A stretch of 63,460 nucleotides of DNA, the filler included, from Olpidium bornovanus S191 (lineage: Eukaryota > Fungi > Olpidiomycota): the NCBI GenBank assembly GCA_017911155.1. It is 30 parts of 30 records of this genome, joined end to end, with 100 filler letters (N's around TTAATTAATTAA, not from the genome) between each part and the next. Parts side by side here need not be neighbours in the genome. Positions count along the whole stretch, not along the records: positions 21,497 to 26,396 come from JAEFCI010006434.1; 29 more parts are not named here. The stretch is one strand, 5' to 3'. Every line of letters begins with the position of its first letter. The first letter of the stretch is position 1. The position numbers were made by a program, and so were the translations under genes. Positions 21,497-26,396 of the stretch are shown here, piece after piece. The notes beneath the pieces are model-generated. The model searched no databases, was not told the origin of the DNA, and saw only the letters and a list, made by a program, of their open reading frames with translations.

Positions 21497-22740
21497 CATG
21501 CAGGCTTGGAGGAGCCGCGACCGCAACTTGAAGCGCTCTCTGCAAGATCACGAGGAGCGCTATGAGCGACTTGCGTCGTTGCTGGACCTGATTAGAGTTG
21601 CAAACCCAGGCACAACAAAGGAATTCGAAGTGAACGAGAGGAACCGGTTTTTCGGGGCATTTTTCTTTTTTTCCAGCATTTGTCTGTCTTTCCAGCATTT
21701 GTCTGTCTTTCCAGCATTTGTCTGTCTTACCAGCATTTGTCTGTCTTTCCGCCTGGAAGACCGCTGGTGCCAATTCTCGTCCAGTGTTTATGACGGACGC
21801 GTGTCACTTGAAGGCAACAGACAAAGGCGTCTATCTTAGCCTGTATGCAATTGACGGCGAGCGTCATCTGGTCCCAGTTGCAATTGCAGTCGTCCCAATC
21901 AAAAACAAAGATCATTGGACATGGTTTTTTCACCACCTTGTTACTGCTCTGCCGTTTCTGAACTCCCCGGAAATTTGGATCATTAGTGATGGTAAAAAAG
22001 TATGCCAACAGCAATATTTTGCCAGTTGATAATGCTCTTTCTCATGCTGACTTTCGATTGTCGTCCTTCACAACGTTTAAGACAAGGTTGGGCGGGAAGA
22101 TTTGGGCAGCGGCAAAGGCGCCTACTCGCGAACAATTTGCGGCAGTTATGACCGATGTGAGAAAGATGCACCCAGCCGCTTACGAGTACCTGGCTGCAAT
22201 CTCGCTGGCGGCATGGACATTCCCCCATGCCCCCCATCCGCGGTTCAGGGTTCTCACATCAAATACGTCAGAGGCCACAAACTCCTGGATGCTGGAAGCG
22301 CGGAACTTGGAGCCATTTGAGACGTCTTCCAGAAGTCAACAGGCCTTCTGTTTGAGCGGAAATGCAAATATTCAAAGCTTGAATCTCATCTTCCGCCTTC
22401 TACAGTGCAAGTCCTCCACCAACACACCACCAAAGCTCAACGACAGCAGACAACGTAGACCGACAATTTTGTGTTCTGTTTGACAAGCAGTGATCAAACT
22501 TTGTCTCGCATTGCCAAACCCACAGAACGTACATGTTCTTGCGGCGCTTACCAGCAAGAGCAGCTGCCTTGCGCGCACGCTTGCACCAGGGTTCTGCAGA
22601 CTGGTCGCGACATCAGCGAGTTTTCACACATCAGCTACTCCATTCAAGCTCTATGCAAGATTTATGAGGAATCTATTGTTCTTGAGGAATCTATTGTCCG
22701 GGGCTATGTGCGCCTTCTTCTATGGCGATCTCGTGGCTGA
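21497..22740 (+). mobile_element. Mutator-like (MULE/MuDR) transposase pseudogene with SWIM finger
   Basis: RPVFMTDACHLKATDKGVYLSLYAIDGERHLVPVAIAVVPIKNKDHWTWFFHHL...WIISDGKK (MULE domain); LTSNTSEATNS; RTCSCGAYQQEQLPCAHA (SWIM). Several frameshifts and stops. Confidence 0.92.
21671..21746. repeat. 19-bp tandem repeat x4 (TTCCAGCATTTGTCTGTCT) inside the MULE ORF
   Basis: Units at 21671, 21690, 21709 and 21728 (last has one T>A). Confidence 0.95.
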
Positions 22741-23339: not shown

Positions 23340-23870
23340 TGTCTGCCAAAGGCCATTTTGGGCGCTGACAGCGGGCTCGCAGGATGTTAACGGGAGGTGG
23401 AGTAGCTGGGAACATGTCCTGGTATTCTTTGACTACCTTCGTGAACCGTCCGTCGATATCTCGAGGACTTTCTAGGTCTTCGACGCGTCCTTCGACGATG
23501 GTTGTGACAGTTGCTACCTTGCCTTGTTGTACTGCATTTCCCGGCTGCTGTTTGGACATAACTGTGTGACGGTGCCAGCCGTCCAGTCTATGATGGGATT
23601 TTCGTGGCGCAGCCAGCGTAACTCCAATAGGATGTGGGATGTTACGGGTGCTACCAAGGATTCTAGAGTGCGCATGGTAGTCCCTGTGCTGACGTCTATA
23701 GTTGCGTATTGATCTGCTGTAGCGACTGATCCTTGTGCGTATTTTAGGAATTTGGTGGCCCCCCTTCGTAACGGCATGTCTATCTTTTTGGCGACGTCAT
23801 CGAAGACCAGGATTCCAGTACAGCTGCTATTGATGATAGTCACCGCTGGTATATCGTCTATAGCCACATC
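23340..23870 (-). pseudogene. Ty3/Gypsy aspartic protease and pre-RT linker remnant
   Basis: DVAIDDIPAVTIINSSCTGILV (catalytic D.G replaced by N.S)...ILLELRWLRHENPIIDWTAGTV (LG..WL...NP.IDW..G motif), then after a frameshift VVKEYQDMFP. Confidence 0.75.
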
Positions 23871-23886
23871 TGTTGCGCATCAAAAG

Positions 23887-23959
23887 TGGGCCGACCGAGG
23901 GTCGAACTCAAGATTATCCTTTCCCAGAGGGACGCTCTAACCAACTGAGCTATCTGCCC
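23887..23959 (-). tRNA. tRNA-like sequence (pseudo-tRNA, GGG at anticodon position) in TRIM 3' LTR
   Basis: GGGCAGA-TA-GCTC-AGTTGGTTA-GAGC-G-TCCCT-CTGGGAA-AGGAT-AATC-TTGAG-TTCGACC-CTCGG-TCGGCCC-A. A box TAGCTCAGTTGG and B box GAGTTCGACCC present; the anticodon stem is broken. Confidence 0.7.
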
Positions 23960-24122
23960 TATTCACCAGGTGTCTGGCTTGCCCTGCAAAGCTATTCCAA
24001 CACCCCCCCTCGAGCCAGGCATCTCAGGCACTGCTGTTAGTCAATGGGGCTCGGCCACCCGCGCAACCACAATCGGAGGAACAAAGTCACGATTGGGCTC
24101 ATAATCTGTTGCACATCAAAAG

Positions 24123-24196
24123 TGGGCCGACCGAGGGTCGAAACCGGGACCTTCCCTTTCCAGGAGGGACGCTCTAACCAACTGAGCTATCTGCCC
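24123..24196 (-). tRNA. tRNA-like sequence (pseudo-tRNA, TGG at anticodon position) in TRIM 5' LTR
   Basis: GGGCAGA-TA-GCTC-AGTTGGTTA-GAGC-G-TCCCT-CCTGGAA-AGGGA-AGGTC-CCGGT-TTCGACC-CTCGG-TCGGCCC-A: a 74-nt cloverleaf with a perfect anticodon stem, but C33, T53 and an A5.G68 mismatch. Confidence 0.75.
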
Positions 24197-24203
24197 TATT
24201 TAC

Positions 24204-26396
24204 TGTCGCTCTATGCCATATATATAGAATTTTACGAGCTCAAATACAAACAGCTACCGGGCGGAATTCCCAAACACAAGCAAAAGGGTATGAGCCTAAC
24301 GCGGACAGCGCCCTGCCCGTGAACGCTCCCGACGAGCGCACCTCCACCCCCGCTCCCGAAGAGCGAACCATCCTACCATCCTTCCCCCCTTCGGGAGCGC
24401 AGCAACCATCTTTCACGCGACCGCCACCGCGCCATCCTCTACGCCGCGCGAATTTCCTTCCACCATCCCTGCGCCGCCGCGCAGCCGCCATACCCTCTGC
24501 GCCGCCGCGCACTTCTCCGCCGCCGCTGCGCGCCCGCCGCCTCCACCGCTGCGCGCCCGCCGCCGCGCGCTCACCCCCGCCGCTGCGCGCCTGCTACCGC
24601 GCGCTCGCCCCCGCAGCTGCGCGCCCGCCGCCGCGCGCTCGCCCCGCTGTCGCCGCCGCGCGCTCGCCCCCGCCGCCGCGCGCCCGCCGCCGCGCAACCG
24701 CCATCTGCGCCGCGCTCACGAAGAGTGCGCAACCGCCATCTGCGCCGCCGCGCAACCACCAACCTCCTTCCGCTGCGCAGCCCGCGGCATCCTTTCGTCG
24801 CGCAGCCCGCGACAATGCCCTTACGGCAAAACAGAGGACAGCCCCGTCCTTCATCTCGTGACCACCATGACCCGAGACGAAGCTTCCGACGCCGCCGCTG
24901 CGGCACGCCGATCCCCGTCTACCGTCCGTTCTGGAGCGGAGGTGAGTGCCACTCCGTTGACTACACACCTCTTTGCTGAGGCCGGCAGCGCCGGAGAGAA
25001 CAAAAAACAAAACGCGCCAGAAGGCGCAGCAAGGAGAGGCACCGCCTCTGCAGTTGCCACAGAGAGTGACTGCGCTGCCATGCTCGAAGCACGACTAGAG
25101 GCGCTAACCAGAGAACGAGAGGAAGAGAAAAAGGAAGCACGCATGCAGCTTGAAGAGCAGTGCCTGCATATAAACCAGCTCATCTCCATGTTCCAGCGGT
25201 TTTTGTCAGCGCAACAGACACAGTAACAGGTACATTCGAGCAGACGAGAAAGCGAGAGGATCACAAGAAACAACCAGTCACTCTCCGACAAGGAGCACAC
25301 AGACGAAGTGGAATCCGTGGCGTCGTCGTCCGCTGCTCGGGAACCACGAGAAATACAATGCGAACAACGCGAACACCTATGAGCTCCGCGGGAACTACAC
25401 CCACGAGCATTCACAATACGGGACCCCGACGTGGACCTGCAACCTACAACGCAAGGTGCCATGCCAGCTGCGTGGCAAGTCAAACAGCTCCTTGCAGACG
25501 TGCCGAAGTACGATGGAGGTGGTGCCGATGCACTACAAACGTTCATTCCCAAGTTCGACACATACGACCGGAACAGTCATGGCCTTGTGACAGACGCCAT
25601 GAAACTTGACCTCGCTGTCCAGAAACTACAACGCCAAGCGCATAAATTGTGGCTCACACATGAGGCGAAGCACCTGATCGGCTCGCCTGAACGCTGGACA
25701 ACCTGGCCACAACTGCGAGAGGCTTTGCGTAAACGTTTCCTTCCGTCAAATTACCTGCGTGAACTGCGCGAGAAAACTAACCAAAATACATTTCTCGAAG
25801 TTCAATTCTGTTTCTGCATACATTGATGCGTTTAACACCATATACATGCAGCTCCCAAATGTCTGCGAAACTGACATTTGCCTCCTCACGCAATTCACCG
25901 TTGGTCTCCCATCATACATTCAGGAACGGTTTGAGTATTTGAAGGCCTCCGAAACAATTGACAAAGCACAGAATGCTGTGATGCGCCTCGCCAAACACGT
26001 CACTTGGCCCAACTTTACAAGTCACACGCATTATGCTGGCACAATGCCGACGAGTCCCACCAATACGACCCCGCCGACTGGCCGCCCTCTCCCGTGCACG
26101 GCGACCGCTCGCCTGATCTGGCCGACCCCGACGTTCCTCTTGACGCCGACAAGGATGACATCTACGTTGTCGACCGTATCACCGATCACCGCTATGATCC
26201 TGTGCAAGGCTACTCCTTCCCCATCAAGTGGAAAGGATACGCTCCTACAGACAATACTTGGGAACCACACGCAAATCTTTCCTGCACGGCCAAGCTCGAA
26301 CAGTATTTCCGACGCAAGCTTCTCCCGTTTCCCCCGGAACTGCAGCATGCGACAGACTCAGGCACAACCGACTTGGCCAACTCCTTCGCCTTGTCC
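24204..26396 (+). mobile_element. Internally deleted chromovirus (Ty3/Gypsy): probable LTR, gag, then integrase tail and chromodomain
   Basis: Gag frame from 24858 with stops at 25224 (TAA) and 25380 (TGA): VPKYDGGGADALQTF...WTTWPQLREALRKRFLPSNYLRELRE / LTKIHFSKFNSVSAYIDAF...QFTVGLP..IQ. Immediately after comes DPADWPPSPV...YVVDRITDHRY...FPIKWKGYAPTDNTWEPHANL (chromodomain). Candidate LTR 24204-24814 (TGTCGC...GCGACA) is tentative. Confidence 0.85.
24460..24720. repeat. Imperfect GC-rich minisatellite (GCCGCCGCGCGCTCGCCCCCGCCGCTGCGCGCCC-like units)
   Basis: Recurring gccgcgcgctcgccc and gctgcgcgccc blocks. Confidence 0.7.

Follow-up and report, generated by a model that had tools for sequence, protein, structure and literature searches.

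The locus and its identity

What is the repeat, built around two tRNA-like units, that occupies positions 23871 to 24203 of a stretch of DNA from the zoosporic fungus Olpidium bornovanus S191? The whole stretch, which we call the window, is 63,460 nucleotides (nt) long and joins 30 parts of assembly GCA_017911155.1, the part around the repeat coming from JAEFCI010006434.1. Coordinates are window positions unless another sequence is named, and the features of the repeat all lie on the minus strand. A preliminary description had read the repeat as a non-autonomous miniature long terminal repeat (LTR) retrotransposon, each LTR containing a tRNA-like unit, and with a primer-binding site (PBS) as well as a polypurine tract (PPT) flush against the LTRs, and this structural reading is borne out by the anatomy of the window and by the family copies. 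We conclude that the feature is very probably a 5'-damaged copy of a Helenus-type terminal-repeat retrotransposon in miniature (TRIM; TRIMp3), a member of a family of non-coding LTR retrotransposons of about 365 bp that belongs to O. bornovanus or a very close relative.

Using BLASTN and direct reading, we found that the LTR-core-LTR unit of the family recurs on three other contigs of GCA_017911155.1, here called L001, L002 and L003, two of which carry complete copies flanked by a target site duplication (TSD):

L001, minus strand, 681-317, 365 bp: LTR 681-550, core 547-450, LTR 448-317, TSD CGACC/CGACC
L002, minus strand, 2020-1662, 359 bp: LTR 2020-1893, core 1890-1793, LTR 1792-1662, TSD CTGAC/CTGAC
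L003, minus strand: tandem LTR-core-LTR-core-LTR-core that reaches the contig end (BLASTN and reading)

The TSDs of both complete copies are perfect over 5 bp, with a chance of about 1/1024 each, and perfect 5-bp duplications around units with two LTRs imply insertion mediated by an integrase. The preliminary description had made its reading depend on further copies with the layout LTR-PBS-core-PPT-LTR, and all three contigs share that layout; two copies have 5-bp TSDs (L001 and L002) and one contig has a tandem array (L003). The family unit measures about 365 bp, and its LTR of about 133 bp divides into a U3-like part (43 nt), a tRNA-derived unit (74 nt) and the 16-nt tail CTTTTGATGCGCAACA.

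As bait for relatives, spurious plus-strand open reading frames (ORFs) crossing the element were searched in protein collections. The 55-aa ORF at 23873-24040 had one match among 5.8 billion proteins, the hypothetical protein BJ554DRAFT_1885 of Olpidium bornovanus, while HMMER, run exhaustively with the ORF of 92 aa at 24044-24322, added three more short proteins on contigs of GCA_017911155.1 and a further match, a protein of 5434 aa in which 18 stretches match the tRNA-derived part of the ORF. The protein relatives of the window ORFs in these collections were Olpidium bornovanus entries only, and ten window ORFs had no exact entry in the protein collection. The TRIM LTRs of the window fall within the identity range of the O. 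bornovanus genome's own copies (82-96%), and a 338-nt stretch of another window repeat is 88% identical to O. bornovanus sequence; together with the protein relatives, these identities place the window in that species or a close relative, and no sequence matching its own contig at 100% was recovered. Scans of metagenomes with LTR/PBS junction patterns gave no match.

Anatomy of the window copy

The window copy is made up of the following parts:

23871..24002, minus strand: complete 3' LTR, 132 bp, TGTTGG...GCAACA (sequence; end-to-end BLAST alignment with family LTRs)
24002-23960, minus strand: U3-like part of the 3' LTR, 43 nt (sequence)
23887..23959, minus strand: tRNA-like unit B, a pseudo-tRNA called 'Pro-GGG' (ARAGORN; Rfam 45.8 bits)
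23886-23871, minus strand: tail of the 3' LTR, 16 nt, CTTTTGATGCGCAACA (sequence)
24003..24011, minus strand: PPT GAGGGGGGG, abutting the 3' LTR (sequence)
24003..24106, minus strand: non-coding internal region (core), 104 bp, sharing 84-91% identity with the internal regions (100 bp) of L001, L002 and L003
24093..24106, minus strand: PBS GATTATGAGCCCAA (family consensus GGTTATGAGCCCAA), with the exact 10-mer TTATGAGCCC
24107..24203, minus strand: 5' LTR remnant, 97 bp; similarity to family LTRs spans only 24107-24203/5
24122-24107, minus strand: tail of the 5' LTR remnant, CTTTTGATGTGCAACA (sequence)
24123..24196, minus strand: tRNA-like unit A, a pseudo-tRNA called 'Pro-TGG' (ARAGORN; Rfam 50.2 bits)

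The two direct repeats that had been proposed, each with a tRNA-like unit and a common 16-nt tail, were recovered by ARAGORN, Rfam and a repeat search. ARAGORN places the units at 24196-24122 and 23959-23886, and RF00005, which has a gathering score of 29, gives 50.2 bits for unit A and 45.8 bits for unit B with non-standard pairs marked in both. The direct repeat that encloses the units extends from AATAGGGC to CAACAGAT over some 99 nt (identity 83-94%, offset 236/237 nt), and the tail CTTTTGATG(T/C)GCAACA follows directly after each unit. Unit B keeps an intact A box (TAGCTCAGTTGG) and B box (GTTCGA) and has two broken anticodon-stem pairs and an unpaired 5:68 position; unit A carries C33, the same unpaired 5:68 and a damaged B box (GTTTCGA).

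The complete LTR at 24002-23871, announced as 132 bp with TGTTG and CAACA ends, can be read directly in the sequence, and it aligns end to end by BLAST with 7 O. bornovanus LTRs at 82-91% identity. Equally visible is the 104-bp core without coding capacity, with the PBS at the 5' LTR and the PPT at the 3' LTR; the ORFs in it are short and spurious only. Where the earlier account falls short is the upstream repeat. It is present, yet more than incomplete: resemblance to the family ends abruptly at 24203|24204, and no other member matches the 49 nt upstream of that point (24252-24204), whereas the other copies have a 5' LTR of full length. What is left of U3 in the 5' LTR remnant is 7 nt (GTAAATA), the first 36 nt or so of the family U3 being gone, and the missing U3 was not found elsewhere in the piece. 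We also considered 24252-24204 as a divergent U3 starting TGTTTG, and rejected it on the lack of a family match and on the failure of its would-be TSD (GTAGC vs GATGT).

Sequence in common with the region occurs in a single public run, X1, whose contigs give independent support. Two X1 contigs lose similarity exactly at 23871, and the contigs cover 23871-24121 and 23871-24157, that is, LTR, core and the LTR after it. From a loose end behind 24167, and from a joint of 24175 to 23940 that goes back 236, it follows that the upstream LTR in the X1 contigs continues with the same U3 as the 3' LTR of the window copy. One X1 contig joins 24002, the LTR start, to 24121, the end of unit A, and skips 118 nt including tail and core; this joint may stem from a variant whose core has diverged or been deleted.

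Primer-binding site and polypurine tract

The core of the window opens with GA followed by TTATGAGCCC, so that the exact 10-mer lies at 24104-24095, 2 nt past CAACA. At four of the five other LTR-core junctions CAACA passes directly into GGTTATGAGCCC, L001 having TGTTATGAGCCC, and in four of the five the core starts GGTTATGAGC(C/T)CAAT. We take TTATGAGCCC to be complementary to GGGCUCAUAA in the anticodon stem-loop (GGGCUCAUAACC) of eukaryotic initiator tRNA-Met (tRNA-iMet). The window PBS is a Copia/Ty5-type half-tRNA priming site. Priming from tRNA-iMet's anticodon loop is the dominant primer type in fungal Helenus (Kojima 2024, PMC10886601), whose published internal regions open with ggttatgagccca and close in G-runs (FASTA supplement, PMC10886601). 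There are 49 occurrences of TTATGAGCCC in the published Helenus FASTA, and the first 13 nt of the PBS are identical to the start of published fungal Helenus internal regions. Because it matches both the tRNA-iMet complement and the fungal Helenus starts, the PBS is a specific, recognisable primer site and not a mere string adjacent to the LTR. A G-run stands at the position of the PPT in every other copy too.

State and age of the tRNA-like unit

We compared the tRNA-like units in an alignment of nine LTRs, those of the window and of the O. bornovanus copies. ARAGORN calls a tRNA in eight of the nine, and the cloverleaf is kept in 90% of the cells of the alignment, without compensatory changes and without any excess over shuffles. 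All nine leave pair 5:68 unpaired, CCGGGAT is the consensus anticodon loop, and C33 is found in five, in departure from the U33 and the fully paired acceptor stem of a functional tRNA-Pro; C33 and the unpaired 5:68 mark an inherited relic that does not work as a tRNA. The tRNA-like units of most Helenus families are likewise judged non-working (Kojima 2024, PMC10886601). The family consensus retains an intact A box (TAGCTCAGTTGG) and B-box core (GTTCGA), and a T4 run lies directly 3' of the tRNA-like unit in nine of nine LTRs. We read the tRNA-like unit as a promoter relic.

The LTR pairs within elements are 85-91% identical (88% for the window copy), no closer than LTRs compared across elements, and this low identity of about 90% indicates that the copies seen are old. 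Substitutions per site per sequence are lowest in the tail and LTR end (0.016, vs 0.06-0.09 elsewhere) and reach 0.091 in the tRNA-like part, vs 0.067 in U3 and 0.064 in the core. The low variability of the tail fits a role as the U5/att end.

Proposed mechanism and alternative explanations

We propose that RNA polymerase III (Pol III) would start the RNA at the tRNA-like unit of the 5' LTR by way of the internal A and B boxes, and that some of the transcripts would pass the 5' LTR's weak T4 run to end in the 3' LTR, with the tRNA-like unit serving as R and the last 11 nt or so (GATGCGCAACA) as U5. The minus strand would be primed at GGTTATGAGCCC by a 5' fragment of initiator tRNA-Met that stops in the anticodon loop, the G-run would prime the plus strand, and an autonomous element with the same primer, most likely one from the Copia superfamily, would supply reverse transcriptase and integrase in trans. 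A PBS of this type and a TSD of 5 bp accord with Copia, and LTR-like units on L002 and on another O. bornovanus sequence, L004, carry the same PBS. Pol III transcription, read-through of the T4 run and the Copia helper are inferred, and the conserved boxes and the like arrangement of published rust Helenus LTRs speak for them.

Several points weigh against this account. The T4 directly past the tRNA-like unit, were it an efficient terminator in this organism, would keep a Pol III transcript from ever reaching the PBS. Among the O. bornovanus sequences examined, an autonomous element with a matching LTR or leader was not recovered. The neighbouring element with a related PBS has a weak gag match to PF03732 (20.7 bits, below cut-off), a family typical of Gypsy, and the gag ORF at 25431-25826 has no relatives within the length window searched. 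The window copy itself has no TSD; the 5 nt after its 3' LTR are GATGT, and a comparison is impossible because the 5' end is lost. Lastly, LTR pairs are about 90% identical in every copy seen, with no sign of recent activity.

The same observations on the T4 run give substance to the alternative that survives best, namely that the element is the same TRIM but is transcribed by RNA polymerase II (Pol II) from U3, the tRNA-like unit being a passenger relic of a captured tRNA-derived short interspersed element (SINE) or tRNA gene without promoter function. Under this explanation the T4 in all nine LTRs could halt Pol III before the PBS, and the tRNA-like part is in fact no better conserved than U3 or the core; the Helenus paper itself calls Pol III activity unproven (PMC10886601). 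Conservation among dead copies, however, reveals little about selection at the master copy, and the cores of the A and B boxes are intact in the family consensus. In addition, published Helenus families that are unrelated show the same succession of tRNA-like unit, T4 and a further 8-26 nt up to the end of the LTR, a recurrence that suggests functional design, and Cassandra, the 5S analogue, has been reported to yield Pol III transcripts. We consider Pol II transcription with a passenger tRNA doubtful on balance, though a substantial contender.

Far less probable is an origin that involves no transposon, in which a short tandem array or satellite with a unit of about 233-236 bp (tRNA pseudogene plus spacer) grew by unequal crossing-over. 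The at least three head-to-tail units of L003, the 1.4 units of the window and the X1 joint that goes back 236 would all be expected of such an array, but tandem arrays are also a known by-product of TRIMs (LTR-11_DR), the supposed spacer opens with a canonical half-tRNA-iMet PBS and closes with a PPT, and L001 and L002 consist of exactly two LTRs and one core, bounded by TGTTG and CAACA and by perfect 5-bp TSDs of unrelated target sequence. These TSD-flanked copies already largely rule out a satellite. That the locus holds two ordinary adjacent tRNA-Pro genes or pseudogenes, born of local duplication and targeted by retrotransposons, is scarcely credible and is refuted by the family copies: two predictors do call tRNAs, a TATA-like run lies about 25 nt upstream of copy A and transposon fragments lie around, but that run belongs to the sequence that replaced the family U3, C33 occurs in five and an unpaired 5:68 in all nine of the LTRs, the repeat reaches 16 nt past the tRNA to CAACA and in copy B also 43 nt upstream to TGTTG, and the unit is dispersed over other contigs with its PBS, PPT and TSDs.

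The surrounding transposon nest

The TRIM copy sits inside an older retrotransposon, within a nest of transposons. Its immediate neighbours on the two sides are:

24204..24316, plus strand: sequence replacing the TRIM U3, starting TGTCGC at 24204 (sequence)
23514..23867, minus strand: degenerate Ty3/Gypsy-like protease ORF, beginning 4 nt past the TRIM 3' end (motifs read directly)

On the upstream side, GGGTATGAGCCTAACGCGGAC at 24296-24316 (plus strand), 92 nt past the break, is a degenerate PBS and leader of the kind found in L004 and L002, where a PBS with leader follows LTR-like units (GGTTATGAGCCCAACGGGAC in L004 at 1068; L002 at 2440-2418). The GC-rich leader past this PBS-like site resembles the L004 leader, the control being weak, and the similarity of 24204-24295 to the LTR-like units of L004 and L002 is no better than that of shuffles. 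Going by its sequence, 24204..24316 probably represents the 5' LTR, with PBS, of a further LTR element that inserted into the U3 of the TRIM 5' LTR. This second type of LTR element shares the half-tRNA-iMet PBS; it is a candidate for the helper family, and at the least it resides alongside the TRIM and uses the same primer.

Details of the related units were noted in passing. In L004 (961-1090, plus strand) a 106-107-nt TGTCG...CGACA unit is followed by GGTTATGAGCCCAACGGGAC, and L002 (2560-2400, minus strand) reads ...ATCAAAAAA|TTATGAGCCCAACCCGGAC after a GAGGGG|TGTGTG... boundary. Degenerate short tandem repeats with a GC content of up to 88% (CGCCGCCGCGCGCT / CCGCTGCGCGCC, spacing 14-34 nt) occupy both 24400-24800 of the window and 1100-1534 of L004; the GC-rich repeats 3' of the PBS-like site (plus strand) appear to form the leader of the LTR element. 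At 961|962 L004 reads ...CCGAC|TGTCGTAGAAT, which comprises the LTR-like unit, PBS and GC-rich leader, vs ...CCGAC|TTGGCCAACTCC at 26373|26374 of the window, which looks like the empty site of the nested insertion present in L004. The window also encodes a chromodomain at 26004-26396 (plus strand; Pfam Chromo, 55 bits). Its O. bornovanus homologue (P0006, L004 157-816) is 88% identical over 64 aa, and in P0006 a C-terminal integrase domain of Copia type (SH3_retrovirus PF25597, 81 bits) leads directly, in one open frame, into the chromodomain. The combination is notable, a chromodomain being the hallmark of Gypsy chromoviruses.

On the downstream side, the protease-like ORF carries INSSCTG, in place of the D-S/T-G motif, and LLELRWLRHENPIIDW; it has no Pfam match, and its assignment is a reading of these motifs. 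The protease-like part passes at 23867-23089 (minus strand) into a start resembling reverse transcriptase, FTKVVKEYQDMFP, again with no Pfam match. A decayed Mutator-like transposase extends over three frames at 21718-22740 (plus strand; MULE 28.6 bits, SWIM zinc finger 26.3 bits), no X1 contigs fall on it, and just upstream of this degenerate MULE transposase a 19-nt unit, GCATTTGTCTGTCTTTCCA, is repeated five times head-to-tail at 21657-21751. Imperfect repeats of about 30 nt (...CAGATTTTGCATCAGAATCCCC...) lie directly upstream of the L002 TRIM copy, at 2260-2030 (minus strand).

Distribution and annotation

The tRNA-bearing TRIM extends to a new fungal phylum, Olpidiomycota, which among zoosporic lineages stands nearest to the non-flagellated terrestrial fungi, and the range of Helenus among fungi now goes beyond Basidiomycota; no paper linking Olpidium bornovanus with retrotransposons turned up in the library searched. 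The finding also has a practical side for annotation. All LTRs of the family are called 'tRNA-Pro' by ARAGORN or Infernal, and the NCBI annotation overlays the element with 'hypothetical proteins' such as BJ554DRAFT_1885, so that tRNA and gene counts of this fragmented assembly are inflated by the transposon. Genes for 'hypothetical proteins' are annotated across copies of the TRIM, antisense to the tRNA-like units, at 3-626 and 1209-3046 of L003, 118-627 of L001 and 1657-2078 of L002. A gene with a PBD domain has the L003 array upstream of it, about 580 nt away. The invariant T4 between the tRNA-like unit and the LTR end makes the family a compact test case for read-through of a first terminator and stopping at a second in an LTR element that would be driven by Pol III.

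Comparison with known systems

The Cassandra elements of plants resemble the Olpidium family in being non-autonomous miniature LTR elements with a small-RNA gene or Pol III promoter in each LTR, a PBS and a PPT. They differ in carrying 5S rRNA and in their length of 565-860 bp, whereas the Olpidium element carries a tRNA; an Rfam scan of the piece finds tRNA only and no 5S rRNA, the defining feature of Cassandra. Likeness to the tRNA-derived SINEs (SINE2) lies in the tRNA-derived Pol III promoter head and in the short, non-coding, dispersed units. SINEs lack LTRs, PBS and PPT, end in a tail that is A-rich or related to a long interspersed element (LINE), and are copied by LINE enzymes. The Olpidium family, with its TG...CA LTRs, PBS, PPT and fixed 5-bp TSDs, is therefore not a SINE2. 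With Copia/Ty5 elements it has in common a PBS complementary to the anticodon stem-loop of initiator tRNA-Met and not to the 3' end; Copia/Ty5 elements are autonomous and driven by Pol II, whereas the Olpidium element has no coding capacity.

The closest comparison is with Helenus, the TRIMp3 type, whose fungal families come from Pucciniales and Agaricomycetes (Kojima 2024, PMC10886601). Published Helenus elements are 311-1263 bp long, the fungal LTRs measure 111-262 bp and start tgttg..., and the TSD is 5 bp in fungi and plants (PMC10886601). The Olpidium family shows every structural mark of Helenus, being a short two-LTR non-coding element with tRNA-like boxes in each LTR, a PBS, a PPT and a 5-bp TSD. 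In size (LTR/internal/total, in bp) it stands at 132-133/100-104/~365, vs 130/95/355 for Helenus-4_PTrit and 111/99/321 for Helenus-6_PTrit. As in fungal Helenus, the internal region opens with GGTTATGAGCCCA, the mark of anticodon-loop tRNA-iMet priming, and closes in a G-run; the LTR start TGTTGGAAT is common to the Olpidium family and some rust Helenus, and the CAACA end is as in Helenus-2_PTrit. The LTRs of rust Helenus also have a T4 run past the tRNA-like unit and then 8-26 nt to the LTR end, and 5-bp TSDs, tandem arrays and a tRNA-like unit that is not credible as a working tRNA are further features in common.

There are differences as well. The host belongs to Olpidiomycota, whereas the Helenus-bearing fungi of Kojima 2024 are Basidiomycota only, namely Pucciniales and Agaricus, Coprinopsis and Amylostereum (PMC10886601). 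Specific likeness in sequence to published Helenus does not go further than the PBS, the ends of the LTRs and motifs generic to tRNAs, and cttttgatg, gagttcgaccc, gagcccaatc and gacacctgg are absent from the published Helenus FASTA. The Olpidium tRNA-like unit is called Pro(GGG/TGG) with C33, and all copies seen are old (about 90% identity between LTRs).

We think it unlikely, though worth stating, that the Olpidium family is of the same lineage as rust and agaric Helenus and not an independent invention, a reading suggested by the shared TGTTGGAAT start, CAACA end, PBS GGTTATGAGCCCA, T4 and 5-bp TSD and by the near-identical dimensions. If it were true, TRIMs with a tRNA promoter and Copia helpers with half-tRNA-iMet priming would be older than the divergence of Olpidium from the terrestrial fungi, or the element would have moved horizontally between plant-infecting fungi. 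More generally, the design of a TRIM carrying a tRNA may be old in fungi, or may be easily re-invented wherever a Copia element primed by tRNA-iMet's anticodon loop is present.

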